Assembly: GCF_000150275.1 (NCBI RefSeq)
Contig: NW_002060946.1
Location: 4,235,454 to 4,299,453, forward strand
Length of the DNA stretch: 64,000 nucleotides
Source of the DNA: Trichoplax adhaerens
Lineage: Eukaryota; Animalia; Placozoa
Direction of reading: 5' to 3'
How positions within the stretch are numbered: the first letter of the stretch is position 1; every line of letters starts with the position of its first letter. Shown piece after piece: positions 6,567-45,527 of this stretch. The notes beneath the pieces are model-generated. The model ran no database searches. It was not told where the DNA came from and worked only from the letters and a program-made list of their open reading frames with translations. The position numbers and the translations under genes are program-made.

Positions 6567-8447
6567 TTAATGATAAACAAACTTTTGACGTGCTTGAATA
6601 TACTCTTCAGTCTGAAAGCATTGTTGCATCTGATCCAATTCGTAATTTCGATGGTCATGCAATAATTGAAACCAATCATCAGTCATTAATTTCCTCTTCT
6701 TATCCAATATACTTTGCACCTGTTCATCATCTTGTGTTAACTTATTGGCTTCAACACTTAACATTTGATCGAAATGATCATGATCTTTAGCAATTAGTTT
6801 ATCAAACATGCCTATTTTAACAGCTTGACGCGCTAACATTGGCACGACATTATTAGTAATTTGTCTAGCTCTCTCTTGGCCGACACGTTTAGGTAAGAAA
6901 TAGGTATAATATTCAGAACCGAATAACCCCATCGATTTATAGTGCGGGTTAAGGATGACAGCATCATGCGACCAAACCAAGTCAGCAGCTAATGCCATCA
7001 TAACACCACCTGCTCCGGCGTTACCTTGCATAGCTGATATGACAACTTTATCACGAATAGAGAAAATCTCTTTAACTACATCATCGATTGCATTAATGTT
7101 TCGCCATGATTCTAATGCAGGATCTTTAGAGGCTTCAATGGTATTCAGGTTAATACCATTGGAGAAGAAATTGTAGCCACCACATAATACAATTGTATTA
7201 ATCAATTGATCTTGGCTACAGCGGTGTATAGCTTGGCGTAGACGTAAACATTGCTCAGTACTCATAGCCCCATTATAAAATTCGAAATGAATATAAGCGA
7301 TGTTGCCTTGACGGTTTATCCAAATTTCTTGAAAGGTCTCAGGCCGATACCCGTATGAATAATATTCCATCTTAGGTGCGACTTCTTCTACACCTTCTAA
7401 TTCACATTGTGATAAAACTGATGTGGAAGGCAATTTGATAAATTGCCTACCATGGCTTGCTTTCATATGGCTGATCCATACACCTTGATTGTCGACAGTC
7501 TTGAATAGAACTGCTCCACTACGTTTAGCTATGATATCACCTGGTTTAGCGTCGGTCCGTTTATTAATTAATTCTGGCGATTTTTCAACATGAGCACCGA
7601 AAATTAATCGCCTAATGTTTGCACCATGAGCTGTATTTTCGGTATACATAATAGCGCCCGGTTGAGAATCTGACATACGAACAGTGTTAGCAATCTTATG
7701 AGCGGACATAGTTTTCCAATCGACAAGTCGATCATTCCACGCCATTTTGGCACGAAAAGATCCCTTGACATCCGGTTGATCATAATCTAATGGTCTCGGT
7801 GGTATTTCAAGACGGAATTGGTCAACAGCTTGTAATAAAGCTCGTACAGCAGCTTGAACAATTTCATTTTGATATAAGCTCGATTTGGTAGCTTGTCGCT
7901 TTATTGGGAATGTAGCTGTACTTGAAACATCACCAGCATCTATTTCGTCGGCCGCTTGTAATACAGTTACTCCCCATTCCGGCAATTGATCATGTAATGC
8001 CCAATCGATTGAGTGTATCCCACGATCGCCAACAATGCCGGGATGAACAATCCAGCAAGGTGTGGATCGAGCAGATGGTTCATCATATAACTGTGGTGGT
8101 ATGCGCTTCGTCAAAAATGGGCAAATGATAATATCGGGATTTTCACGTTCAGCGCATTCTATCATCGTATCTGGACTTGGATTTTCAACAATTTCGACAC
8201 GATGGCCACGAGTGGTTAATTCAAGGTAAGCACGTTGAGTTAATGAATTATTGGAATTGCAGAAAAACAAGATATTATAACGATCGTGAACCTCTTCACC
8301 TATAACAGCTGATTCTGCAGTTTTTCTTGCAGTGACGGCCAGTTGATGGATTGGAGCAGCTGCTTGATGATGAATAACTCGTCGCAATAAGGACGTAGTT
8401 GATGAAAATTGGCGTTTACATAACTGATGTAGCTGACTTTTCAACAT
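6567..8447 (-). CDS. hoxX: HoxX/HypX-like protein (N-terminal formyltransferase fold fused to C-terminal crotonase/enoyl-CoA hydratase fold), 626 aa, intronless, with predicted mitochondrial presequence
   Basis: Family motifs present: NSLTQR, CPFL, VHPGIVGDRG..SIDWAL, WGVTVLQA..EIDAG, SDSQPG, FYNGAMSTEQC.RL, FFSNGINLNTIEA, GNAGAGGVMMALAAD, LNPHYKSMGLFGSEY.TYFLPKRVG, and C-terminal ARQKFVY. The ~56-aa N-terminal extension is rich in R/K/S/L and has no acidic residue before position 45. Confidence 0.93.
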   Translation of the reverse strand: MLKSQLHQLCKRQFSSTTSLLRRVIHHQAAAPIHQLAVTARKTAESAVIGEEVHDRYNILFFCNSNNSLTQRAYLELTTRGHRVEIVENPSPDTMIECAERENPDIIICPFLTKRIPPQLYDEPSARSTPCWIVHPGIVGDRGIHSIDWALHDQLPEWGVTVLQAADEIDAGDVSSTATFPIKRQATKSSLYQNEIVQAAVRALLQAVDQFRLEIPPRPLDYDQPDVKGSFRAKMAWNDRLVDWKTMSAHKIANTVRMSDSQPGAIMYTENTAHGANIRRLIFGAHVEKSPELINKRTDAKPGDIIAKRSGAVLFKTVDNQGVWISHMKASHGRQFIKLPSTSVLSQCELEGVEEVAPKMEYYSYGYRPETFQEIWINRQGNIAYIHFEFYNGAMSTEQCLRLRQAIHRCSQDQLINTIVLCGGYNFFSNGINLNTIEASKDPALESWRNINAIDDVVKEIFSIRDKVVISAMQGNAGAGGVMMALAADLVWSHDAVILNPHYKSMGLFGSEYYTYFLPKRVGQERARQITNNVVPMLARQAVKIGMFDKLIAKDHDHFDQMLSVEANKLTQDDEQVQSILDKKRKLMTDDWFQLLHDHRNYELDQMQQCFQTEEYIQARQKFVYH

Positions 8448-27130: not shown

Positions 27131-27180
27131 CGTCAAGTCGATTCGTTAACTTACGATTTGGTCCCTAGATACCTATATAA
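27131..27180 (+). promoter_or_regulatory. Putative core promoter of secreted gene 1: conserved 24-mer plus TATA-like box
   Basis: cgtcaagtcgattcgttaacttac (27131-27154) is identical to 31801-31824. It is followed by tatataa about 100 bp before the ATG. Similar tatataaa boxes lie about 100 bp upstream of the genes at 35073 and 44766. Confidence 0.55.
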
Positions 27181-27272: not shown

Positions 27273-27980
27273 ATGGAATTGCACAAGTATTCATTACTAG
27301 TCTTAATCTCTGTTACAGCCATCCTCATTCCAAATTGTCAAAATGCATCAGTAGCAAAGAGATCAGCAACGGATGACGCAGGGAAACTCACCCATCCAAT
27401 ACAAGCATTCGCAGAAATACTTCAAAAGCTTCCTGATACTTGCAACCTACCTAACTTCAACACTACCGATATTAATCTATTAGAATATGCTAGAAAAAAA
27501 GTTGGAGAATCAAGATTTATAGATGCCGTCACAAAAATGATAATTAGTGATTTGGCTAAAAATAATCAAAAATTATTGTTACATCAATTTATTTTATATC
27601 CAAAAATTTTGAATACGTCTCTGTCGCTCAGGAATGTATTTATCAACAGGAATAGCAAGAATGCCTCTGTACAAGAATCAAAAGCATTATTCAGATATTA
27701 CTTAGCACTAGCTACTAATATAACTGCTAAATTTGATGACAAGATTCTTACAAAGGGAAGTAGAGAATGCAAATCTTTATTGTTAAAGGCCAATTATGTG
27801 ATTTATTATGTAAAACAGCTATTTAACTTCAATGAAAACAGTAGCCCTAAATTCCTTATCCAAGACAAAAAAAAATTAGGATTTGGCCTTGTTTATATGA
27901 CATCTCCCCAAAGTGGTATTTCTTCGCGTATGCATCTAGCTTTACTTTATCAAATTTTGGAGGAATTCATCAGCCCGTAG
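27273..27980 (+). CDS. Secreted alpha-helical glycoprotein of unknown family, paralogue 1 (235 aa, intronless)
   Basis: Signal peptide MELHKYSLLVLISVTAILIPNCQNA, a KR dibasic site and several N-x-S/T sequons. It shares C.LP..NT, ILYP.IL, N.NS...V, YYL.L, P.FL.Q and YQ.LEEF with the ORFs at 35073 and 44766. Confidence 0.88.
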   Translation: MELHKYSLLVLISVTAILIPNCQNASVAKRSATDDAGKLTHPIQAFAEILQKLPDTCNLPNFNTTDINLLEYARKKVGESRFIDAVTKMIISDLAKNNQKLLLHQFILYPKILNTSLSLRNVFINRNSKNASVQESKALFRYYLALATNITAKFDDKILTKGSRECKSLLLKANYVIYYVKQLFNFNENSSPKFLIQDKKKLGFGLVYMTSPQSGISSRMHLALLYQILEEFISP

Positions 27981-30900
27981 AATGGAAGGAGCAATTAACA
28001 TAACAGAATGAGACGTTACCGATTTCATGCAGAATTATTTAACTTTAAAAAAAACAGTACTTGTAAAACTATGACGCTGTTTTATTCGGTTTATGTTGAG
28101 TTAGCTTCAATAGGGTTATTTCAAATTTTTTTACCTATCTTTTGCTGTTGGTTTGTTTCTTAGCAAGACCAATATAATGTTCAAGTTATTTGCGTTGTTG
28201 ACAGATATTATTTTCGCTATGGTATAACTAAAATTAAAATATTGAAAAAGAATAGACAATAATCTACGATAACAATTAGTAGTTCCTGATTCACATATCC
28301 GGCTAACTATTCCGGTATCGATGAAAAGAAAATACTCCGACAGATATCATAGTATATAGGTACATTAAACTTCAATATTTAGCGTTCTTTAGAATTGCAT
28401 ATTTGTAGCGATGCTTGAAATAGCGTAGCCACGTAAATATCAATGCCGGTTTGCATTCAAATTTAAAGTAATACAGTGTTACGTACGTCAACTAGTTCTC
28501 GTCTACAACTTCGAAATGAAGCCGAATGCAAATTTGATAAATTTTTATTTACATTATAACATTGAATTATATGAGCTCAAATATAATGTGTATGAAAAAG
28601 GTGCTTAATGTCGCACCGTGACCTGCAAATCAATAAAGTCAATATTCAATAAAAATATGCTAAACAGGATTCTGAAAATTAATGAATGATATAGTTGCCA
28701 GTATAATTACGATTAGTTACACGTAATTATAGCATTATGGTTTATAATATTTTAAATTCTTATCTTGTTTATGGTAAAATATTATTACCGATTAATATAA
28801 TAAACTTCTTTGCTGTCTCTATTTTACAAGTATCAGCTAATCGCACACCCCACTAGTGATACTTCGTCCACTTAACTTATACTCAGTAAATTCTCAGTTA
28901 ATTATGCAGATACAGAGTATTATATTTTAGTTAGAATGAAGATAAATATAATGCTTATTAAGCACATAAAATGTTCGTAAGACGCCTTAATAATGAGATA
29001 AAAATTAATTAAACAAATGGTAGTCAAATATTACTTCGTTCTAATGAAGAGCATACTGACTCCAAAGTCTGAAGTACGGTGCATTTCAATTAAAATGATT
29101 AAAGATGATTTATTGATTTAAATGACAACGCAGACATACCATCCAAACGTTTTCCAGGAAATTTTTGATAAAATTCAAAATTGGCAATTTATATTTATGT
29201 GCACAATTATTATAATACTCTATAATAGGAAAAATTAAACGGTCTGCTTTATGTTTTATAACAATGACAATGTTTTTATGATATGTATTAGGACTCAAGC
29301 ACAGTGTAATAAGTTAGCAAGTTATGAAAATATTTGCATGTATATGAGAAAATCACACTTAGCTGAAAAGTTACCGTAGTACCACTGCATTATACTCCCA
29401 GTGTTCTAAATATTACTGCATTGCTAGCAATTGCATATCTTGTTTGATATAGCCTCAGTCATAGTATTTTAAGAAATCAGCGTGCTCTGCACTATTACAG
29501 TAAAGAAAGTAAATTTTTCCCTTTTACGTTTTTCAACAGCAACGTTGTTGAATAATAGGCGTAAGGACTTAAGCCTAGTGTAAATCAGCAAGTAATTAAA
29601 ACATTCACATATACAGTATGGTACAAGAAAAGAAAAAATAATAAAAGACAATAATAATATCACACTTAGTTGGAAGCTATTGTGATAAATTTTTGAACAC
29701 GATAATAAATAATTAATCTATAGAATATTAAAATAATAATTTTTGTGAGTCTGTATTAATGTAAATGTGTGTGTGCTTTACGGTACATGGTGCGGTAAAT
29801 TGCAGGAAATTAACCTAAATTCGTAGAGATGTTTCAACACACGCCCATTTTACGACTAATATTATGTTTTAATCTAATTCTACGCTTACTCTGTCAAACT
29901 TTACCAGATAAAATAAATATACCTGATAATTTAAGCATTGATCAATATAGAATTAAGCTATGCAGTTTAAGGTGACGAATGGTGTAGCTAGTAATACTTA
30001 TCATTATCATAATATTATAGTAATTCCTTATATTGTAATAATAAGTACAGTGTGTTAATATAACATTGACCATCATAATGTGCGCCAAAGCATAATTATC
30101 GAGGAATCAAAGACCCCAAACCATTAGAAATGGATCTATACTCAAGAAAATCCCCCTTTTTGCGGTGGGAGGATGTCGTAAATAAATAATAACTAATAAT
30201 AATGAGTAATAATACGAATTACCTTTCTGTACAGCAATATTACTGTATTGTAATACTATTTACTATCTACGTTGAAGCTGTTGCATGTGTATTCCGATGT
30301 GATTTACCGCAATTATGTGAAACGACAAAACGCCGTTGTTAGTGTTTAGAAATGTTATGAAAGCGTACATTATATTGAAAATAGGACTTCCTTGTTCTTC
30401 TCCTTCCTCAAGTATTTTATCATTAAATTTAATCCCGATGAATGATCAAATAAAGGCAAAAGCCCTATACAAGAAAAGACGCAATTCTACGATTCAGGTT
30501 ATTGCAGATTGTTGGGAGTAAACAAGAGATCTAACGGTCTGCCAAAATTGAAATGTGTGAGATTATTTGACATATAGTAACTACTCGTCATAATTATGTA
30601 TTATGACATGGACTACTAGATGATATATCTAATAGTTTATAGTTTTGTATACTGCATGCTAAAGTTCTGAAGTTGTTTGCTTGCTAATGATACATAGCTA
30701 GAACCGAGTTAAATGATAGTGATCGGAGTATAGCATTTAGGGTGCTGAAAATGCCCACGCTTGCACCATAACTTTCCAGGTGCGGTATTTTTACTTTAAA
30801 ATAATCATTTTAGCTGTGTAAGTACAGTATCATTACAAGTTCTGCGATTGTTTTCTAGCATATTCTAAGCAGGCCATCGGGTTATCAACTTTCAGCTTAG

Positions 30901-31741
30901 TGATCTCTGTCAATCTTTTTAGTATTCCCTGTTCCTGCTAGACTATTTTCTTGCTGTTGACATGAAAATAAATAAAGTAAATAAAAACGCAAAAACGCGG
31001 TCATTCTTACCATTGTTTTGCGGCACTCCTTGGTTCACTGACCGAGCGATGAATCAATTTAAAAGTTGACCGATCAGTTTGTAACCTGCCATTAACAGCA
31101 GGCGATTTATAACTTGACAGGAAGGCAAATAAGCGGACCGGATAAATAAGCTGTCTATAATTAACAATTATATTCATGAATTCTATTTACTAAGCACACA
31201 TTATGTGATACATACAATATCATAGCTAGTATTCTACGCGAATCGAGTATCCTGCCTGACTACCGTAACTACGTTAAATTAAGTTAAAATACAAATTACA
31301 GCGACTAACTAACTAAACGTATTCACTTTACATAGTTACAGTAGTGCACTCTAAGGATTCCATATAGTATGCTACCGGAGACAAAAAGAAAGGAAAAAAC
31401 GTTGATACAGTCAGGAATTACTAAAACACTAACTAACTAGAGAAGGAGAATACTGTCAACTATTCATAAGTGCACTCCGAAGTAGCCATCAAATTGGTTA
31501 TGCATAATACGGCATACGATTTCAGTCTTCCCATATAGTCAAATGACCAGTAAAACAGTCAGCTGCACGTTTTTGCCAACGATCAGTTGCTGACCCTCTC
31601 CTTCTTTTTGTGTAGGATATTGTCATGGGTACTAAAGGTTTTCTTCTAGTGATCACTACCAATCTACAGTATTATTTTAACTGCTGCTCGTGTTATTTAT
31701 TAATTTTATGTTCCTTATTAATTAAAATTGGATGTGTTGCT

Positions 31742-32110
31742 GATAGTGCCATAGGTTACACAGTACTTGGATATTGAGTTACTGTTGATGGCAGTACTAA
31801 CGTCAAGTCGATTCGTTAACTTACCATTTGGGCCCCAATTATCTATATACAGTAGTAGCAGCCGTTCGCATGTATTAATCCACTCACGGCTCACAAGTTC
31901 ACCATTCAGTGAATGGCTAATTATGCGATTTCGTTTCTAGATTTCCTACTTAATAAAATCGATGAAAACGGTAACCCTAAATTTCTTAATTAGTCCATAG
32001 AAAATTGGGGATTTGGCCTTGTTTATACGACGTCTCCACAAAGTGATACATCATCGTGTGTGAATATGGCTTTATTGCATCAAATTTTGAAGGAATTTGG
32101 ATTAGAACTA
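31742..32110 (+). pseudogene. Pseudogene of the secreted family, closest to paralogue 1: promoter retained, ~0.55 kb internal deletion, nonsense codon
   Basis: A promoter/5'UTR copy is joined directly to the C-terminal coding remnant DENGNPKFLN*SIENWGFGLVYTTSPQSDTSSCVNMALLHQILKEF. TAG at 31991-31993 replaces the conserved Gln. The ATG and signal peptide are deleted. Confidence 0.85.
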
Positions 32111-35072
32111 GCTAGCTATACGTTGATGTTCGTATTTAAGCAATAATTACATAACAAAATGAGATATCTGATTTTATACGGTTATACGGTTATTTAGCTT
32201 AAAACCCTTATATGCCCAAGTTGGAGTCAAAATGACCCCACTTGCTCATAAAGTTGTCATTAAAATTTTTATTTATGATTCGATTTTAATTACTTCTTAG
32301 TTAACTTCATTAGAGTTATTTCAATAATTTTCATCCTTTCTTATGTTGTTGACTTATTTCTCAGCAAGAGTAATGCGACGTTAAAGCTATTTGTGTTGTT
32401 GACAGTTAATATTTTCATCACAGTCTAATTAAAATATTGAACAAGCATAGACACTAATCTACGATAATAATTATATTTTATTAGTAGTTCTTGATTTACA
32501 TATCGGATATGTTAAGCTAGAGTATTTAACCGGCAAAGAATTCCTGTATCGATGAAAAGACTCTGATATCAAGGCATATCGATCATTTAATTTCAATATT
32601 CGCTTTCTTAAGAGCTGTATATTTACAATGATGCTTTAAATAGTCTGGCCGCAAAAAAAAACATCAACTCTCATTTGCATTAACATTTAAACTAGAGTAA
32701 CCTAGCGTTACGTACGATTTGCAAATTTGAAAAATTTTTATTTACATTATAATATTTAATTATATCAGCTCAAATATAATGTATATGCAAAGGTACTCAA
32801 TGCAGTACTGTGACCTGTAAATCAATAAATCAATATTCGATGAAAGCATGATAAATAGGATTCTAAAATTAATGAATGATACAGCTGGCTGCATAGTTCC
32901 GATTAATCTGTATGTACTTTACGGCATATAGTACTGTAAATTACATTAACCCAAATTGGCCGAGATGTTTCGAAGACAACTAATTGTAAAGTATTCGGTA
33001 ATCTAATAGTCAAGGATCCAAGAAAATGAAGCGCACAATGATTGGATCAGCGTTAAAGTAAGTGCAATCGGCTTAAGCATTAATCGATATAAAATTAAGC
33101 TACACAATACTAATCTAGACAAGTGCAAACAATTTACCATATCGTGGTCGCTATAAATAATATGATACGGTATATTGATACAACTTTCTCAACCATATGT
33201 ATTATTATATTAATTTTCAGCACAAAGTTAACAGCAAGCTAAAAATTATTGGTATTTTCATTAAAATCTGTAGCTTACAGACGTTTAAATACACTGGCGA
33301 TAGACTGAGTGACGGGTGTCTAGATTGCAAATAGAGTATTTAAAGAGTAATACAGTAGTAAGAATAATAACTATCAATCACATTTTATAATTAGTTAATT
33401 ATCTTGGTGTCGATGCCTTATTCGTTGGACCGGCATTTTGCTATCTATGGTACTTAAGAAAGCGTATACTGTGCGACGAAACTTAATTATCGAGGAATCA
33501 ATGACCCCGAATCATTAGAAATGAATTCACATCGTGCATCACATGTCGATATATGTTGAACGTAAAGAACAGCCGCCCATTTGTGCTGGGAGGATGTCGC
33601 AAATAATTTAGTTAGCAAATATTAATGAGCAATAATATGAATTATCTTACTCTAAAGCAATATTACTACACCATCATATTATTGTACTGTACCGTAGTAG
33701 TACATTAATCATTAGTGGTTAGAAAAGCTATAAAGGCGCACATTGTTTGAATATAGGCCATCTTCCCTCTTCTTCTTCCTTACGTATTTTACCAGTAAGT
33801 TTAACTTCGATAAAATATATTTTTATCAATGATCAAACAAAGACAAAAGCTTTATGCAAGTGAAAACGTCATTCTGCTTATTGCAGCTTGGTGTGAGTAA
33901 ATGAGAGACCCTTCATAGTCTGCCAAAATTAAAATACATGAGATTCTTTGAAATAGACGTAATAACTACTCTTCCTAATTATGCACTGCATGCTCTATGC
34001 TAAAAACCCTGCAGCTGCTTGCTTGCTAATGATATACAGCGAGAACGAAGTGAAATGATGGTGATCATTGCATGGCATTCGGGGTATTAAAAACTCCACG
34101 CCTACATCACAATTTTCCAGGTCCGGTATTTTTACTTTAATAATTATAAATAATTAAAACATCATTTTAACAGAGACAACATACTCGTATAGAACAGCAA
34201 ATAGTATACTACATACTTTTAGTGCGGTGTACTTACTACAAAGTCTGTAATCGTTTTCTAGCTTATATAGAGTAGACCAATGGGTTATCAACTTTTAGCT
34301 TAGTGGCCTCTATCAATCTTTTTAATAGTCCCCATTTCTCTAGATTATTATTTCTTGCTGTTGACGCGAAAATTAATTAAATAAAGAATGTAGAAACGCC
34401 ATCAATCTGACTATTATTTTACAGTACGCCTTAGTTAACAAACCAATCGGGAAATTAATCAATTTAAAGTTGACCGATTACTTTGTAACCTGCCATTACC
34501 AGCGGGCGATTTATGACTTGACAGGATGGTAAATAAATGGACCGGATGAATAAAGTGTAACAATTATATTGATGAATTCTATTCATTATATTGTACATAT
34601 TAAAGTGGTGTACTCTACGGATTCTGCACAGTTACCCTTCAGAGGTAGAAAGAAATGAAAGAAAAAAATTGTTGATGCAGCAAGATATTACTGAAACAAT
34701 AACTAGAAAAGGAGAGGGACTGTCAATTTCAGTGTTGTCAACAATTCATTATAAAAAAGTGCAGAGGCTGACTACAAGTATTTCTCTGATCATTTTAACT
34801 TCACACCGTAACGGCACTCGGAAAGTAGTCACAAAGTAGGTTGCACACAGGACGGTGTACGCTTCAAGTCTTCCTATGCAGTTAAATAACCAGCAAAATG
34901 GGAAGCATCACATTTATACCAGTGATCAGGTACTAACCGGCTCTTTCTTCTCATCGCTAGAGTGCAACACATATATAAACTGTGGAACCGGTCCAATATC
35001 GCTAGTAAAATGTTTTGCAGCATCGCAAGTTGTACTGTACGAGTTACTAAATTTATTGGTCCAAAAGTGAAA

Positions 35073-35810
35073 ATGGATTGGTATTCATTGTTGGCTTTTA
35101 GTTGCATTATAACTATCATCATTCCTAGTGAAGGGAAGAATTTACGCTGCTGCGATGAGGAAGCTTGGAATGTAGGAAATTCTCAGTATTCAGTGAATTG
35201 CGATAGTGCAATTGCAGTATTGAAAGCAACCGTTCAAGCATTATCTGACAAGGATGATTGTAATTTGCCTAGCTACAATACTACAAATTTTGTGCCCTCA
35301 GCTTGCGGGAAAATAATTCAACAATCAAAATTTCCAAGTGCTGTCCTCGATGTCGTCATTAGAAATTTTCCAGTTAAGAACAAGACCCGACCGTCATATT
35401 GTGAAGACATTTTGTATCCCCGAATTTTAAATACTGTATCTCTTGATCATGTATTGAATAACAAAAATAGTACGAATGCCACCGTCGTAGTATCTCTTAA
35501 ATTATACCTATATTACTTGCAATTGTTATTCAGTACGACTTCTAAATATGTACGGAAATGTAGAAAGATTCCTGAAATTTGCGAATATAATTTCATCAAC
35601 AGTATTTTATGCCAAGTCAATCAGGTAACTGAACAAATACCAACTATTTGCTTCGGCGAAAAGGCTAACGTTAACCCCATATTCCTAAAGCAAAGTACGG
35701 AAGATATAGCATTTGTTCTTCTTCATGCTAAATCACCTCAAAATTGCAAGCCGTGGGACTTAGATTTGGCTTTAATATACCAGCTTTTGGAAGAATTTAA
35801 ATTTAAATAA
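35073..35810 (+). CDS. Secreted Cys-rich alpha-helical glycoprotein, paralogue 2 (245 aa from ATG 35073, intronless)
   Basis: The true start is probably gtgaaaATG GAT TGG, the same context as the paralogues, rather than the ORF-track start at 34962. Signal peptide MDWYSLLAFSCIITIIIPSEG. Family motifs CNLPSYNTTN, ILYPRIL, LYLYYLQLL, NPIFLKQ and LIYQLLEEF. Confidence 0.88.
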   Translation: MDWYSLLAFSCIITIIIPSEGKNLRCCDEEAWNVGNSQYSVNCDSAIAVLKATVQALSDKDDCNLPSYNTTNFVPSACGKIIQQSKFPSAVLDVVIRNFPVKNKTRPSYCEDILYPRILNTVSLDHVLNNKNSTNATVVVSLKLYLYYLQLLFSTTSKYVRKCRKIPEICEYNFINSILCQVNQVTEQIPTICFGEKANVNPIFLKQSTEDIAFVLLHAKSPQNCKPWDLDLALIYQLLEEFKFK

Positions 35811-38800
35811 TTTTAAGTACAGTATGTAAATAACAAATTGGCATTACAGAATAAACTTGCACAGGCTTCATATGAAGTTGTTTTAACACTTTTAAAAGAC
35901 GATACAAAACTTGAAGATAATTATTACACTGCGCCATAACAACATAATTTAAATAAAGTTACTTCAATATCTTTACTCTTTCTTGGATTATTTTTAGGCA
36001 AAAGTAATGTGACATTAAAGTTTTTTACAAATAATGACAGTTGATGTTTTTTTGTCTTGGTATACGTGCGCAGAATATTGAGAAAGAATAGACATAATTT
36101 TACGGCAATAATAAATATTCATAGTTGAAAAATTAACAATTGGTGAAGCTGCCTGCGAAGTTTCACGTACTTATGCTACTATGCAATCATTCTATTCTTA
36201 AATTTTGCTTTTGTTAGTAGTGAAATTGTATGGTAATTACATATATTATCGTTATTCTATTATTATTGGTACATCCTTTAAATTTCTTTACTGTAATTGA
36301 ATGTCGTCGTATAGATATAAGTCACGCTATTAACTATACGAGCATATTACCCGTAATATCTTCCATGAAATTAAATTAAAAGTCACGACACGTACTGTAT
36401 ATTGCTATAGCGTAAATATCTCGCCGGTACTTGACGCTAGAATAAAAATTAAGTAAATAATCTTAGTAAAAATGTTTTATTTGTTCTTTCTATAATTTAA
36501 TTTGTTACAGTCTGCAGATTGTTGAACCTCAGTTCCAATTCTTAATCCAATCTTAAGGATAAAAACTCTTTCCAATATTTCATTCTTACTTCATATCAGT
36601 TAAATCCAAGTGATATATTAGTGATATATTGGTACCGGTACATTTGTAAAACGACTAATTAAGCAATAGCGAAGGCTTATAATATCAAATAATTAGTCGA
36701 TAATAACAATTACTCTATTACAGTAATTAAACAATTAATTGGTGCTAAATTAATAGTTTATTTAAGTAGGTACGATATCTTAATCATAGAAGTGTAATTA
36801 CGAGTTGATTACTCTTTCTCATTTGGCATAACAATAATTTAGCATATTGGAATTAATATATTGTGTCTATTTTATAATATATTCGATCATACGGTATATC
36901 GAAAATTAAATGCTACAACGATCAAACGCGATGCAAAGATAATTCAGGATCAAAATAGGCTTTATTTTAATCTGGTACACCAATGGGACGGATCAAGTGA
37001 AATGATAGCGCATATCCTATAACTGTACCTACTCATTAGCTTAATTACGGCAAGATATAGCAATATGCATACGTATACTCACATGAGCAGAGTTACTACA
37101 GTGTTTGAATATAGTCGACCTTGTTGCCAACCAATGAGAATTTCGATTGATATACGCTCTATTTCATGTTTTTGTTGCGCTAATAGCTGAATTACCGCAT
37201 AAAAGAGAAAATTTGGTCTATATCAGCCTATAATCATTGAATGAATTAAAATTTACGATCATAACTTTCATAACACGAAATAAAATAGTTTGTATACAGT
37301 CTAAAAGAACAGAGAAATAACAATCTATGTCACGTGCAAATCATTAGTTATAACCTTGTATGCTGCTGGTCATTAATTATAAGTCTTAGATTAATTAATC
37401 TCTTTGAATACCCTAAAAGTATACCGCTTTGAGCCTTTCGTTGTTTATAAGATAATCCATCACAGTCCTGTTGATCCATAATAATACATCTATCCTGGAA
37501 TAGTTATAATTAGCGTTTTGAAAAATAGAAGAACGAATAACTTCGAATTATTGTGTTTGAATCATAACCTCATCAATAAATAAAAAAATTGATAGCATAG
37601 ATGAAAATATTATAAATGGGGATCCAACGATTAATAAATGATACGCCTCCAGTAACATTCCGATTAATTATAGCTATGATGCCATGAAACCGTATTATAA
37701 CATTTTGAATTTTTGTTTTGTCAATGCTAAAAGTAATTCAATCTTGGCAGATTGCGGAATATTTGTATATGTTAACATATACAATATCATGCATTGTATT
37801 ATTCAATAGAATATATGACTAAAGCGCTAAAGACCCTACTTAAGAGCCTAAAGGTTGAGATAAAAAATTAATTAAATAAAATGGCAGTAAAATTTTACCT
37901 AGCTCTAGACTGCAAACGTCAAGATATTACTTGTCATAGTGGGGAAAGTAAATAGCTTACATTTACGTTTTATAAGAACGATAAATATGAATAATGATGT
38001 TAGGACTAAAATCTGATTTACATTAACATGATATGAAAATAATTGCATACGTATGACAAATTACATTTAGTTAAAAGGTTATCGTACTAATAAATACACT
38101 ATGCTACAGTATTTCAAATATTGCTACATTGTTAGTAATCGTATACCTTGTTAGACATACAGTAATCTCAATCACGGTACTTTTAGGGAGCCAGTGTGAT
38201 TCGCTCTAGAAAAGTAAATAATGTAGCCTGTTTACTTTAGGCTTAACATCAAGAATATCCCAGAATAACCAGCATAGGACTTAAACTTGGCGTAAATCAA
38301 TAAATAATTAAAATATTCACATATTACCTACATAAATAGGAAATCATGATAAAATTATATTCAGCTGAAAGTTGTTATGGTGAAATCATAAACATGCTAA
38401 CAACTATCATAGTATTGTAATGGTACAGTAGTGTGGTGACATGATTTTCGTCAACAATATACAATGTACACAACGCTATAGGGTACTACTTTTCACTGCG
38501 ATATTATGATCAAGCTAAAAACTGATTGACACTTCTAATAGATTCAGCAGTTCAACCTTGAGTACACTAGATACAAGCAGATATTATCGGCCTAAATTAA
38601 CGTATATAAGATTTTTTTATCACCATTATTCTAATGATGTATTGTAACTGTATACTTTACCTCAATTAAATGATGTCGTTATCTACACGTATACTGTATA
38701 CCAATAAGTTTGTAATTTTTTGCTTACTGTGGATGATATACAGCAAGAACAAGAGTAAAGTGGATGTAATAAATTAAGAACGGTATTTGTTTTTTTATTA

Positions 38801-39039
38801 CTATGATTACGAAAAGAAGTTAAACGTCATCAAATCTCATCACTCTTTCCTATAGTACTGCTCTCTACTGTACTGTATTAACAGATACACCATATGAAAA
38901 TTTTAGTATTATTATCTATATGAAATCACAAATAAATTGACGAGGAGTATTAATTTTACATGGTTAGTATACGCCAGTCTACACTATCATATATATATGT
39001 ATAAAACGAAAGGAAGGAAAAACCTATAGTGATGTACCT

Positions 39040-39270
39040 AATAAAAATTTTATACCATAAAAATTGTGTTATACGAGCTACGAAGTTTGGCGATCAAAAA
39101 TGAAAAGGTATTCATATCCATTGTTAGTCTTAAGCTGAGTTATAGCCATCGTCATTTCTTGTAATGAGAATTCTTCAGCAGTTAAAGTTCACAAGATGGA
39201 AAAAGTTATGCTCAGCCAAAAGTAGTATCGAAAAGAACGTCTCCAGCACCAATCTAAGTAAATATTTTTT
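39040..39270 (+). pseudogene. Second pseudogene of the secreted family, closest to paralogue 3: 5' remnant only
   Basis: The 5'UTR and signal region align with 44700-44830. The ancestral ATG reads AGG (39106). The frame reads (MK)RYSYPLLVLS*VIAIVISCNE against MYLYSLLILSYVIAIAIPSNA, with TGA at 39136-39138. The rest of the CDS is largely deleted, and the family 3' flank resumes at about 39650. Confidence 0.75.
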
Positions 39271-42200
39271 TCTTTCCATAGATTGTTACTGTCATATATC
39301 TGAATCTTAGACTTGGTTTTAATGTTAGTATAGTAAGGTAGTACTGTTTGACTGACTCGGTTCGTATCTATAGATATTGTTAAACGATAATATGTATAGA
39401 ATGATAACGATTAATGGTTTATCATAGGATTAGGTATTGATATTATGCCCAAGCGTAGAATCGCTATGCGGAAATTGTGCATTGTATGCGTACGGTATAT
39501 ATAGCTGTATTAGAATGAAGACTGCGAGATTTTTGCGGTAACTACAGAAGTAATGCGGAATAAAGTTAGCTTGTAGCTTAGAAAAAGAAGCACGTGTATT
39601 TCTTTGAGTCCGAACCTGTTCCCCACGAAAATGCGCAACAGTTACTGTCTTCAGATTGGTAAATCTTAGTCCCAATTCTTTATAGAATTTCAAGGAAAAG
39701 ATGTTTCCGAGATTTTATTGTTATCTATATCAGTTAAATTAAAGTAATGTATTAGTGCCTGTACAAAAGGACCAATAAACAATAGCAGAGGCTTAAAGTT
39801 AGTCGATATTAACATATGTTCAATTACAGTAATTGAACAATTAATTAATACTAAAATAGAAGTTTACATAAGCAGACACGACAACTAATCTCTGTCATAA
39901 AAGTATAATTACGAGTTGGTTAGGCTTAACTTAATAAGAATTTGGTACTTTGCTTTTAAAATTCAGTAAATGTATTGTTTCTACTTAATAATACGTAATA
40001 TACTAAAAATAATATCAATTACTTGCAAGCGTCATAGCGGTAAATGTGTTTTATGAGTACTACTATGATATTTAGCATTTATCCAATAGAGTAAAATGCT
40101 TTGATTTCGTCGATTAATTAACGATCTGATATAATCATTATGCATCCTAAAGCCGAATATTGTTATATTTTGGAGATGGCAATAATTACAGGAGTGAAAG
40201 GAAGGAAATTAAATGATAGTGCATAGCATATCGTCACGCCTACTCATTAACGTAAAATACAGCCTGGTATATATGATGGCAGAGAACGAAACGAGGTCAA
40301 GAAAATACTGAATAAAGAGTAAATATCATAACAATTATTTAACTTTCGGAATAATGTTACTGATTGACCCGTCGACTCATGTATCAGAGATGGGTTTACT
40401 ATTCTTTGTCTTTATGCAAATACGTTAAATATCTTTAAATTTCTGAAAGATAAATTATACATTAAGGAAGATTCTTACGATAATCAAATCAATGTATAGG
40501 CATGGTATAGATTACTGTACTGCTGTCATGATATAGCCATTGTCATCAGGCTTTATTCACAAAACATGCATCTGAATATGGCGGAACATGTTGCGAACAT
40601 TGATAAATACTATAGCGGATTGTATTATTTCACTAAACGGCAACACAGATACTAAACTTTGCTTAAAAGGTATCCTTGGTTCACTTCTTACTGAAATTGC
40701 CGTTAGTATAGACCATCTATGCGCTACACCAGCTTTCACTTCATGATTTCAGTACGGTCCTCAATTATTTATTCTCAGATTTCTTTCATACTCATCTAGC
40801 AGTTTAATGGATTTATAAAGCAAATGATGGAACTTTGTACATTATTATTCTTGTGCTTATGAAAGTACGTAAACCATACTCCGATTTGTTCTTTTCCTAC
40901 TACTATAGCAGAATCAACTTTGCTCGTTACTTTATCTTTAACTTGGTAGAAGACTACCATGATTACAACTGCGATAGTAATACCTTGCAGTCTATTAATC
41001 CTACCTAGTACACCAAATTATAATGATATAGTCGATATTTAATTTAGGAAAAACGATGTAAATCTTAATCGTGTCTATATCTTGAAATTATAATGCCAAT
41101 ACTGAGAGGTGCTAGCTGGCTATATTATCTGATTTCTAAAGTGATATAGAGATAGAAAAGTAATAGTAATATAATTAAAGGTTTCCCAACAATCTATAAT
41201 ACGCTTTGTGTAACATTGTTATTATTACCAGTCTCAACTAGAATTAGACATACCATATACGGACTGTAACAGTAGACTAGCAATCGGGGTGCGGTTGTTT
41301 CATTTTTTGCACCCCTTCATAGATTATTTATTAATAAAATCTTGTTTACTCTTTTACCCATTCTTCTTAACCGGATCTTGCCTGCGGATATTGTTCTAAG
41401 TATCACTTAAATTACCGGAAAACAATGTTTACCTTGATACCAATGACAAAGGACAAAATAATTGATATAGTATAGACTGCATAGTTACTAACGCAAGCTA
41501 CTAAATATCTGCGACAAATGCACAAATAGTGAGCCCATTTGATTAGACATCTGTACTGATATATTCCTGTAATTGTATCGGCAATTTTACGTGGTAACTT
41601 CGTAATATAAGCTAAAAATAATAAATTTAATGCTATACTCGTATGGCAATGTTCTATTTATATGTACACAGTAGATACTATCGTTAATAATAGGGTAGAA
41701 AATAAGCTCTATCAGCAGTAATAGTAAATAAGGAAAAAGAAAGGGGATAATTTTTGTTCATTTGAGGCCGAAGGTTAACAGCAATAATAATAATTTCCTT
41801 TTTAATTCTGTACCGGTAAGATGCAAATTAAAATTAAAATCAGTAAACTATATTAGCAGTCTTTGTAGGTCGTGAGTTTGCTTCTAATACAACATTTGTC
41901 AACTGCACTTCTTGTACAGTGCGGTAATCATACTGTTTATCGAATGAAGTAAAGTACTGGTACTGCTTTGCTTTCCTATACTTCGATACGTTTTATAAGT
42001 ATATAGAATAATGTTAACGAATAGTTATATACATAGCATACAATTAGTATATAGCACAATAACAGAGGCCTAGGACGTTTATAAAGTGCATAGTATTCAA
42101 TGAGTACCGTACTGTATATCGATATGTTTCGCAGATATGATTGAGTTAATTAATACTCCAATACAACTATTCCGGATAGAATATGAGATAACTAGTTTCT

Positions 42201-44765
42201 AATTATTGACTGTAAAAAAGAGTTTACATGGCTACGGTGCTGATGTAATCTATTTAATGTCCATAGCAAAAATTATTGCAATTGCTTTTGCGTGGAGTTT
42301 GAAATAAATATAGTAGCTCTTAGAAACCAATTAATCATGACAACTATGAGATCAGCTATCCGTAGTGAAATTACTGCAATGACAGGTACAATATAACATG
42401 AAATAAATAATTTAACTATTTGATAATGCAATTACTTCGAAGTAATAATTGCAAATGGACCTTGGTAATATCATCAAGTACTACGTACTTCGCAAAGTAC
42501 CCATGGTAACAGAGGATATACGGTTAATTTTTAAGTTTAGACGATTACAATTTCGGTTCGGGTTTTTTTGCTATGTCGATTGACAAATCTCAAGGCCTAA
42601 GTCTGAAAATCGTAGGACTACTTACGTGATTTATGTTTCTCATATGGGTAGCATTATATAGGATGCTCTAGGGTTGACAGAGCTGATGATTTATATGCTT
42701 TTTATGCGTAGTAGTAGAGTTCACACTCGTTATGCTTTGCCCACTGTATCCAGTCTGTATGTAATGTACCTGTACTTTTTACATGACATTAATTTTATAC
42801 ATAAAGCTGAAACTAAAAATATTATACTGTATACTGTACATAAAAGCTTTGCAGTAATAAGTAATACTGTGATATGTACTGTAGTCTTAAGTTACTTTAA
42901 GTGTATGTAATTAAAGACAGAAATAAAGTTTTTATACTTTATGCATACCATATTTGGCTCGAGATTCGCTATTTTTTTTCGTTTCATCGTGCTACGAAAT
43001 GGCTAATTGTATTCAATAGTTAAGTTGTATGCTACGTGGACTGTAGATATAATTACATAATTTTATAATCTTTTGTACATAGATTTAGTAATCATAAGTC
43101 ATGAAGAAGTCGCTTCCCGTTCGTTACCAACGGGTGTAGATAGCTAGTTTAATTTAATATGGTGATACTGATGCGTTCCATAAGGGTTATTTTTGACAAT
43201 AAACGTCTTGACACCTAATGTTTAGTTTCCGATTCGTCACCATTTCTTGTTATATTCTACTGCAGTGTACCTAATATTCCCTGTAAATCTACAATGCCAA
43301 GAAAGATTATAGATGCCTCTTCCTTCTATATATCCGATTATCACTGTCACATTTTGATTAAAGCGATTAACTTTAAAGCCAACACAATATTCAAATAATA
43401 CCCGAGGTAGTTCAATCAATAGGAAAAGTAAATAGCCTACTTTTGCGTTTTATAACAACGATAATTTTGAATAGAAAAGTAAATAATACGTATGTAGGAT
43501 GCTTTTTTTTACGTTTAACATCGAGGATATCCCAAAATAATCGCAAAGTATTAAATTTAATGTCAATCAATAAATTATTAAACTATTTATTGGGTAGTAT
43601 ATGAAATGAAAATAATAATGAAATCATTTAGCTGTAGGTTGTAATGGAATTATGAACATGATAAAAATTATCATAATGCTATGCTGCTGTTATACTACTT
43701 TAATTTTCACTACGAAGTCATTTAATCATGTACTTTAGTAAAATGAAATATACATCATCAACTAGAAATGGAAGAGCATAAGGTTTCAAGATACAACTAC
43801 TCTTAATAATACATAGTATTGTCACTTCATTTGTAAGTGCGTCCGAGTGCGGTACCTACCTCAATTAAATTATATCGTCGTCTACACGTAAGCGGTGTAC
43901 TAAAACTTTGCAATTGCTCGTTTACTTGCTGCTAATGCATTGATATACGGGTATACGTACTGCAAGAACGGAGTAAAATGGTGTTGGTCGGTTACCTCTC
44001 TTGATATGACTGCGTACTGAGTATAAAACGGATAAATTGTCTGTTTCGCACGGTATGGTGTGCAGATTAAGCTAGTACTTTAATAAATAATCTTGTCAGG
44101 TATTTATTAGACCTTGACGAGATGATAATTAATAATTTACGAGTATACTGCTACCGTAGTGTACGTATTACAAATTCTGTTTATTGTTGATTTTGTAAAG
44201 CAGGGTGGGGGTTACCTACGTTCAACTTCGTTGGTTTCTATCAGTTTTCTTACGGTCTCTGTTCCTGCCCAACGTCCTTTTGTTATTGTTAATAAGAAGA
44301 TGAAGAAGAGGCGCAGCAAAACGGTAAAATATCCAATCACTTTACCCCAGGTGTATCGCCCTCAACTGTACTACAGACGGTGCGATTTAGTTTACAGTAT
44401 ACGGTATATCTCAGTGTTATGTGAACATTTACGTAAATGCTTAATTAATCATGCAAAATTGCAAATTAAAGGAAGGGGAATTAGGTGAATTAACATTAAT
44501 TTAATATTACGCAGTTGGTATACTCCAGTCTATATACTGTAGAGTGTAAACGTAAAAGAATGAAAAAGAACAGACGAATAGTCGTAAAACCTTTACCGTT
44601 GGGTATTGTTTTCTACCTGAATGCGGTAGGTGCAGGTGTATAATTGGACGTTCAATGCGGACCTTATATAAACCGCATAAACAGTCCAACATCACTACGA
44701 CAAATTTTTATCCTTTTCAAGTTGCATTGTGCGAGTTACTAAATTTGACGGCCGAAAAGTGAAAA

Positions 44766-45527
44766 ATGTATTTGTATTCATTATTAATCCTAAGTTATGT
44801 TATTGCCATCGCTATTCCCAGCAATGCAAAGGCTTTACGGTACCGGGATGAGAATGCTTCAATGCTTAAAAGTTCAACAAAGTCAAAACTCTGTTTAAAG
44901 TATATGCAAGGATTGCAAGCAGTTTTTCAACGATTATCTGATGTGAATATTTGTTCGTTTCCTAGGTATAATACTAGAAATTTTGAACTTCCGAACTGCG
45001 AAAAAGAGCAAACTTCACCATCGCCATTTACAGATACTTTCCTTGATATGGCTATTAGTAATTTGCCTTTTAATAATACAAATCAATCGTTATGTCGTAG
45101 GGATATCTTGTACCCTACAATTCTCGCTAATGTATCTTTCCACCATGCATTGATTAACAAGAACAGCACTGACGTTTCCGTACAATTATCTATTAAATTA
45201 TATCGATTTTACTTAAAACTGTTACACGCTATAGTTAATACAGACAGAAATAATAAGGTTCTTAAATTGGAGAAGATGTGCTCAATTCCATTCATGGATA
45301 CTAGTTTGGACGCCATCAACGTTGCAGCTCAAGAGATACCATTCAATTGCTTCGATTGCGAAAAGGACATCAATCCTATATTCCTTTACCAAAATACCAA
45401 AGATATTGCATTTGTTTTTCTTCATGCTCCATCCAACCAAAGTTGCGAACCATACCATTCAAGTGTCGTCTTGATGTATCAGCTGTTAAAAGAGTTCAAA
45501 TTTGAAAAATTAAACTCGCTTATATGA
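44766..45527 (+). CDS. Secreted Cys-rich alpha-helical glycoprotein, paralogue 3 (253 aa, intronless)
   Basis: Signal peptide MYLYSLLILSYVIAIAIPSNA. Motifs CSFPRYNTRN, DILYPTIL, INKNSTDVSV, LYRFYLKLL, NPIFLYQ, DIAFVFLHA and LMYQLLKEFKF. TATA-like box at about 44665. Confidence 0.88.
   Translation: MYLYSLLILSYVIAIAIPSNAKALRYRDENASMLKSSTKSKLCLKYMQGLQAVFQRLSDVNICSFPRYNTRNFELPNCEKEQTSPSPFTDTFLDMAISNLPFNNTNQSLCRRDILYPTILANVSFHHALINKNSTDVSVQLSIKLYRFYLKLLHAIVNTDRNNKVLKLEKMCSIPFMDTSLDAINVAAQEIPFNCFDCEKDINPIFLYQNTKDIAFVFLHAPSNQSCEPYHSSVVLMYQLLKEFKFEKLNSLI

Follow-up and report, generated by a model that had tools for sequence, protein, structure and literature searches.

To our knowledge, helical cytokines are traceable by sequence in vertebrates only, with the Upd ligands of insects as a further case. 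The Upd proteins of Drosophila are secreted, glycosylated ligands that are thought to be helical and cytokine-like, without recognizable similarity to vertebrate cytokines; they act through Domeless and JAK. In the hormones GH, prolactin, placental lactogen and leptin, a distant helix is tied by a disulfide to a crossover loop or to the end of another helix. IL-34, M-CSF, SCF and Flt3L use the four-helix cytokine fold via receptor tyrosine kinases, so that a ligand with this fold is possible without JAK. A recent survey detected IL-6-family ligands in vertebrates only and found no IL6R-like receptors before the molluscs (PMC13203501); the receptor CRLF3 is reported to be absent from Placozoa in one study (PMC6797617) and present in another (PMC12026705). 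Here we analyze a small array of paralogous genes in the placozoan Trichoplax adhaerens, contained in a window of 64,000 nucleotides, namely positions 4,235,454 to 4,299,453 of contig NW_002060946.1 (assembly GCF_000150275.1, forward strand). The three intact genes of this array encode proteins with signal-peptide-like N-termini, and the structural model of one of them most closely resembles the long-chain helical cytokines. We describe the proteins as candidate cytokine-like ligands, and put forward any class-I cytokine homology or function conditionally.

Three paralogous genes and the modeled fold of their products

The three genes lie on the plus strand, each as a complete open reading frame (ORF) in a single exon and each supported by the alignment with its paralogues. 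Paralogue 1 spans 27273–27980 (235 amino acids), paralogue 2 spans 35073–35810 (245 amino acids) and paralogue 3 spans 44766–45527 (253 amino acids). Together they account for three of the five ORFs longer than 150 amino acids in the window, which is AT-rich (GC about 32%). The start of paralogue 2 was set at the Met codon at 35073, which aligns with those of the other two paralogues; the mechanically defined ORF began at a GTG at 34962. The three proteins can be aligned from end to end, with 30–42% identity and 52 invariant columns, and the intact copies, which have no internal stops, are about 66% identical to one another in nucleotide sequence. A preliminary description of this DNA had proposed three intronless paralogues of 235–253 residues that share motifs in a fixed order; both the reading frames and the full-length alignment bear this out. 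Upstream of each ATG is a TATATAA box, which aligns with those of the other copies: at 27174–27180 for paralogue 1 (99 nucleotides upstream), at 34972–34978 for paralogue 2 (101 nucleotides) and at 44665–44671 for paralogue 3 (101 nucleotides), all on the plus strand. Because the frames are open and a TATATAA box precedes every start codon by 99–101 nucleotides, single-exon genes are plausible.

At the N-terminus of each protein, a hydrophobic segment of 15–17 residues is followed by small residues (..IPSNA/K and ..IPSEG/K, the slash marking the putative cleavage site). On inspection, small residues occupy positions −3 and −1 of this site in paralogues 2 and 3, and the putative signal peptide of paralogue 3 comprises residues 1–21. 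No second hydrophobic span and no KDEL-type C-terminus is found in any of the three. Signal peptides had been part of the preliminary description as well; the hydrophobic N-termini are indeed there, and, as judged by eye, they look like signal peptides. There are twelve cysteines in paralogue 2 and eight in paralogue 3, while past its N-terminal region paralogue 1 has just C57 and C166, both of which are invariant in the family. A prohormone reading was ruled out, there being no repeated peptides flanked by dibasic sites.

A structural model of mature paralogue 3 (232 residues) was created with AlphaFold2, using an alignment of the three paralogues only. The model has a mean predicted local distance difference test score (pLDDT) of 55 and a predicted template modeling score (pTM) of 0.61. 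It consists of four helices, at residues 17–38, 116–141, 153–174 and 210–221 of the mature protein, with pLDDT values of 70–87. The resulting layout is helix A, a 77-residue loop, helix B, an 11-residue turn, helix C, a 35-residue loop and helix D; confidence is low in the loop segments at mature residues 40–99 and 179–209. In precursor numbering, and with all coordinates on the plus strand of the window, helix A is formed by residues 38–59 (44877–44942; pLDDT about 73–87) and is followed by the 77-residue A–B crossover loop (44943–45173), where pLDDT is low. Helix B is formed by residues 137–162 (45174–45251) and helix C by residues 174–195 (45285–45350), with the invariant Cys172 just before it. 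The helix D region, residues 231–248 (45456–45509), carries the invariant pattern L..YQ.L.EF. The A–B loop holds a mini-helix, FTDTFLDMAIS, together with the invariant motif ILYP.IL and an N.NS sequon. The preliminary description had outlined a helical layout by eye. Its four helices and long loops recur in the model; its choice of the first helix does not. The first amphipathic segment of that description (FTDTFLDMAISNL and its equivalents) is modeled as the mini-helix in the A–B loop, and helix A of the model lies about 45 residues earlier.

The model of paralogue 1 repeats the order of helix A, long loop, helix B, short link and helix C. This model, computed with the signal peptide in place (pLDDT 47), was rejected as an artifact in which the signal-peptide helix is packed into the bundle, giving matches to Dps/ferritin and to generic bundles. 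From its ferritin/Dps-type matches, we infer that the models of paralogues 1 and 3 have a common topology.

To identify the structures closest to the paralogue 3 model, it was compared with 48,161 representative PDB chains in an exhaustive structural search with VIA-align. Ranks 1–22 of this search are occupied by helical cytokines without exception. The best match is IL-11, with a Z score of 8.0 and a root-mean-square deviation (rmsd) of 3.5–3.6 Å over 123–126 residues. It is followed by placental lactogen (Z 7.9), fish interferons (Z 7.7–7.8), prolactin (Z 7.7), CLCF1 and IL-27p28 (Z 7.5 each), leptin (Z 7.3–7.6), IL-6 (Z 7.2), CNTF (Z 7.1), LIF (Z 6.9) and GH (Z 6.7); G-CSF is also among the cytokine neighbors. 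A Foldseek search of the PDB with the models of paralogues 1 and 3 returned nothing at E≤0.001, and the non-significant matches to the paralogue 3 model are rich in cytokines. When the Foldseek candidates were re-aligned, the same cytokine families filled ranks 1–42; IL-34 is also among the matches (Z 5.4–5.7). In the ESM Atlas, the structure search with the paralogue 3 model gave nothing above a template modeling (TM) score of 0.31. A match to hepatitis core antigen in the Atlas feature search (0.76, with both proteins) was dismissed as noise. The model, then, has the up-up-down-down topology of a long-chain cytokine, and none of the other helical folds is a better fit. The uncertainty lies in the model itself, not in what the model resembles. 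AlphaFold followed by fold searching was the course that the preliminary description had recommended, and it yielded a four-helix bundle whose nearest structures are cytokines only, from a model of moderate confidence.

Several properties of the sequences bear on the same question independently of AlphaFold. Averaged over alignment columns, the hydrophobic moments at 100 degrees are 0.6–1.4 in the predicted helices, versus 0.2–0.3 in the long loops. Proline and glycine are enriched in the predicted loops, and nearly all N-x-S/T sequons (six in paralogue 1, four in paralogue 2 and six in paralogue 3) fall within them. The invariant cysteine pair is located four residues past helix A (Cys63 in paralogue 3) and two residues before helix C (Cys172). 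If these two cysteines are bonded to each other, as is usual for secreted proteins, helices A and C would be antiparallel; with the short B–C turn, helix B would be parallel to helix A, and a crossover connection would therefore be needed, which the 77-residue loop can supply. The topology argued in this way from the invariant cysteines would agree with that of the model. In paralogues 2 and 3, two further cysteines occur where helix A begins and where helix C ends, at similar distances from the invariant pair (20 versus 23 residues); in paralogue 3 the predicted disulfides are Cys63–Cys172 and probably Cys43–Cys195.

With the IL-6/IL-12 family, the Trichoplax proteins have in common the predicted up-up-down-down topology, the long A–B and C–D loops and a mini-helix in the A–B loop; members of this family are neighbors of the model at Z 7–8, with an rmsd of 3.5–4.6 Å over 114–138 aligned residues. 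Also common to the two are fast evolution and tandem duplication, and the Trichoplax proteins would, like these cytokines, be secreted glycoproteins. The differences are that the mature Trichoplax chain is longer (about 215–230 residues), that its helix D is short, that its loops are strongly conserved and hydrophobic, that its putative staple runs from the end of helix A to the start of helix C, and that its genes are intronless. Moreover, the two are alike neither in sequence nor in profile, and the searches of the Trichoplax genome detected neither a JAK nor a receptor of the gp130/IL6R type. GH, prolactin, placental lactogen and leptin share the topology of the model and have no sequence relation to the Trichoplax proteins; they differ in being known from vertebrates only, with receptors that carry WSXWS, a motif not found in the Trichoplax searches. 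As to the Upd proteins, neither Domeless nor JAK was detected in the Trichoplax genome. IL-34, M-CSF, SCF and Flt3L differ from the model in that their structural scores are lower and in that they are dimeric short-chain bundles.

Orphan status and history of the array

Searches by sequence return only members of the family itself. A Pfam-A hmmscan of the paralogues at E≤10 gave three unrelated noise matches and no cytokine family. The preliminary description had pointed to a likeness to IL-6 motifs, and this likeness has no counterpart at that threshold among the IL6, LIF_OSM, CNTF, Hormone_1 (GH), Leptin and EPO_TPO families of Pfam. A profile search of PDB sequences with the family found no chain at E≤10. 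When 1.84 billion representative proteins were searched exhaustively with a HMMER profile, three proteins came back, all of this family, and a word-indexed search of 5.8 billion proteins with paralogue 2 returned its own cluster only. In the literature, we found no paper on the locus tags or accessions of the counterparts in Trichoplax sp. H2, and none linking Trichoplax with helical cytokines. The genes are real and are orphans, and the family appears so far restricted to the placozoan genus Trichoplax, in two closely related strains.

Two decayed copies also lie on the plus strand. Relic 1 (31760–32905), a paralogue-1-like copy, retains a paralogue-1-like promoter stretch at 31760–31849 and the 3′ flank at 32299–32905. 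The middle of this gene has been deleted, and its last 66 codons, at 31904–32101, contain two stops. Relic 2 (about 38990 to 40355) is a paralogue-2/3-like copy. It has a TATA element at 39000, a 5′ untranslated region at 39060–39107 and an ATG at 39100, after which 12 signal-peptide-like codons lead to a TGA at 39136–39138. The remainder of its coding sequence has been lost, and its 3′ flank, at 39641–40355, resembles those of paralogues 2 and 3. When the whole assembly (105.6 Mb in 1,414 contigs) was searched with the profile of the three proteins, only paralogues 1–3 and the C-terminal match in relic 1 (31904–32101) were recovered. Because two relics stand beside three intact genes, the locus is, on sequence grounds, a five-unit tandem array (three intact units and two decayed) with birth-and-death evolution.

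In Trichoplax sp. H2, the locus is collinear and its DNA is 99% identical; over 20 kb, no gene other than these three has been called, and all three are annotated as hypothetical proteins. Between the strains, divergence is 0.63% in the coding sequences versus 1.1% in non-coding DNA. The synonymous and non-synonymous differences stand at 5 to 7, which corresponds to a ratio of non-synonymous to synonymous rates (dN/dS) of roughly 0.4; between the paralogues dN/dS is 0.4–0.8, with dS saturated. As read from these comparisons, the genes evolve fast under some constraint, and their frames are kept while the relics decay. Paralogue 2 has an identical protein in a public collection; its H2 orthologue is RDD47036.1, named 'hypothetical protein', and the 200 nucleotides 5′ of the paralogue 2 ATG show no difference from H2. 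Paralogue 3 has no identical public entry. Its sole record is the H2 orthologue RDD47048.1, with three residues different, and this assembly appears to lack an annotation of the gene. In H2 paralogue 1, two base pairs (CC) corresponding to window positions 27391–27392 are deleted, which shifts the frame at codon 40. The H2 annotation places the start at an upstream ATG in another frame; the resulting product has 201 residues and no signal peptide. This frameshift is either a true pseudogenization or an assembly error.

To assess expression, we examined contigs over positions 34000–37000, from sequencing runs whose library types are not on record; no run listed as RNA contains the gene. The interval is fully covered in one run, which resembles genomic DNA in its behavior. 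In two others, short contigs extend across the promoter and the 5′ coding sequence of paralogue 2 (34795–35279). One small run has contigs at 35494–35753 and 35847–36132, the latter ending 22 nucleotides past an AATAAA at 36110. The end at 36132 would fit the 3′ end of an mRNA, and the contigs are compatible with transcription. Upstream of paralogue 2, position 34750 marks another TATA-like element (TATAAAA), which lies about 45 nucleotides 5′ of the contig starts at 34795–34799 in two runs, as well as an in-frame upstream ATG at 35010 that is absent from paralogue 3. Because of this second element and this ATG, transcription of paralogue 2 could start at either of the two TATA elements.

Receptor and pathway components in the genome

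Components of a potential pathway were sought by comparing Pfam families with the genome exon by exon, a procedure of limited sensitivity. For STAT_alpha, the Pfam cut-off is exceeded by exons at two loci, C1414:9845024-9845248 and C1413:8995512-8995727; judging by these exons, the genome contains at least two STAT-like genes. STAT_bind gave no match. Nor was there a match to EpoR_lig-bind or to Jak1_Phl, and none to IL6Ra-bind passed the threshold. A JAK candidate suggested by a sub-threshold SH2_Jak match was rejected, as the match falls among tandemly arranged SH2-kinase genes of the Src type. The region C1408:1978000-1996999 (minus strand) contains tandem Src/Frk-like SH3-SH2-kinase genes, including two single-exon kinase-domain segments of 287 amino acids.

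Tissue_fac, the FN3 domain of class-II cytokine receptors, has a genome match just above the cut-off. An FN3 gene family, in which at least 15 D1-like exons were counted, is clustered at two sites, C1400:1.354-1.396 Mb and C1404:2.017-2.051 Mb; the regions read were C1400:1362000-1380000 and C1404:2018000-2037000. The D1-like exons have the pattern C-x7-W..PP..C ... W..AC-x7-C, and in these exons Tissue_fac, IL6Ra-bind or CRLF2-like_D2 outscores generic fn3, with weak scores of 14–28 bits. They are followed by D2-like exons and then by Ser/Thr-rich stalks. In one gene of the family, there is a transmembrane segment and a 54-residue tail that contains tyrosine. No WSXWS motif occurs in the D2 exons read, and the sole cytoplasmic tail seen has no Box1. 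The preliminary description had called for a search for FN3/WSxWS receptors. The search found neither that motif nor an EpoR- or IL6Ra-type binding domain, and turned up a weakly receptor-like FN3 family, whose members are leads for a receptor, nothing more.

A candidate placozoan ligand and its alternatives

From these results we infer a scheme in which the five single-exon TATA-box genes (three intact, two decayed), Trichoplax-only so far, would belong to a family of fast-evolving secreted proteins. The mature proteins, of about 215–230 residues, would be N-glycosylated and disulfide-stapled, and would fold as a four-helix bundle with the up-up-down-down arrangement of long-chain helical cytokines. 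Each would act as a diffusible extracellular ligand, similar to a cytokine or a growth factor, for a cell-surface receptor on other Trichoplax cells. On the strength of the model and its structural neighbors, we lean, with modest confidence, towards a cytokine-type four-helix bundle as the fold that these proteins adopt. The joint claim that they have this bundle and also act as extracellular ligands is more tentative, and we would give it slightly less than an even chance. Descent from the class-I cytokines of bilaterians is neither shown nor needed for this proposal; the fold could be convergent, or the sequences too diverged to trace. A fuller version, in which the proteins are genuine placozoan helical cytokines acting through FN3 membrane proteins or a receptor tyrosine kinase, possibly to STAT, seems unlikely.

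If the fold is true, a vertebrate IL-6/IL-11-type structure would be new for such an early-branching animal, and, for an animal of very few cell types, the genes would offer a clonable candidate for signaling by protein ligands other than neuropeptides. If the proposal as a whole is true, cytokine-type intercellular signaling, by descent or by independent invention, would exist in an animal that lacks nerves and blood and for which no JAK has been described. Should the predicted fold prove wrong, the family would be one more lineage-specific family of the secretome.

The last of these outcomes corresponds to an alternative that we consider possible, though doubtful: the proteins would be lineage-specific secreted alpha-helical glycoproteins that are not cytokine-like and that either are made by gland cells for digestion outside the cell, mucus or adhesion, or serve in antimicrobial action or defense, and the AlphaFold2 topology would be an artifact or one portion of a larger fold. 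A number of observations speak for this alternative and against a cytokine-like ligand. About half of the chain is modeled with low confidence, as 118 of the 232 residues of the paralogue 3 model have a pLDDT below 50, from an alignment of three sequences; the other four AlphaFold2 models score lower than this one, and the model that ESMFold gives for the H2 orthologue cannot be used (pTM 0.23). Helix D is short, with 12–18 residues. The strongest conservation, in the motifs ILYP.IL, NP.FL.Q and IAFV.LH, is found in segments modeled as unstructured loops; the model hints at a small beta-bridge formed by two of these motifs, and the actual structure is probably more complex than a simple bundle. 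The best Z score is 8.0, and for helical models the search tool rates Z scores below 8–13 as a common arrangement; the Atlas structure search came back empty. The hmmscan, the three receptor and kinase families and the records of RNA sequencing, all negative as described above, count on the same side; the genome searches with those three families found no cognate pathway parts. The frameshift in H2 would make at least the paralogue 1 copy dispensable, and such a copy loss, together with rapid evolution and tandem birth and death, is also typical of defense and digestive secretome genes. On the other hand, when low-pLDDT stretches are excluded from the alignments, the confident helices by themselves still match IL-11 and placental lactogen best. 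Of the 48,161 chains, none with a generic up-down bundle or with an apolipoprotein, saposin or toxin fold ranks above the cytokines. Independently of AlphaFold2, the loop lengths of 77, 11 and 35 residues and the invariant cysteine pair fit a crossover topology.

The preliminary description had gone further than a cytokine-like fold and had suggested class-I cytokine-like ligands; of this proposal, the fold is borne out by a model of moderate confidence, whereas a sequence or profile link, a JAK-specific domain and a WSXWS receptor did not emerge. In its strongest form, the proteins would be true homologues of the class-I cytokines of bilaterians (IL-6/Upd) and would signal via a receptor of the cytokine-receptor-homology type to STAT. 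We regard such homology as quite improbable, even though the best structural neighbors belong to the IL-6/IL-12/GH long-chain group, STAT_alpha exons exceed the cut-off at two loci, and the D1-like exons of the FN3 family score best to cytokine-receptor-type Pfam families. Those FN3 matches are weak, and the accompanying WSXWS and Box1 motifs are missing from the D2 exons and the tail that were read; no JAK-specific domain was found in the genome. The proteins themselves resemble no cytokine family in sequence or in profile, their genes are intronless, and so far they occur in two closely related Trichoplax strains only, whereas surveys place IL-6-family ligands in vertebrates and IL6R-like receptors from molluscs onward (PMC13203501). 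At the other extreme, the ORFs might have no function at all, whether as chance frames, as pseudogenes in decay or as pieces of a mobile element or other repeat, as could be argued from the lack of a run recorded as RNA, the two dead units among five, the frameshifted copy in H2 and a fairly high dN/dS. We consider this highly improbable, as three frames of 235–253 codons have stayed open in DNA of 32% GC at about 66% nucleotide identity, next to relics with stops and deletions. Signal-peptide-like N-termini, cysteine positions, sequons and TATA boxes are all conserved, the coding sequences diverge less than their flanks between the strains, and the family is confined to one locus and not dispersed.

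Elsewhere in the window, the longest ORF is an intronless frame of 626 amino acids on the minus strand, at 6567–8447.

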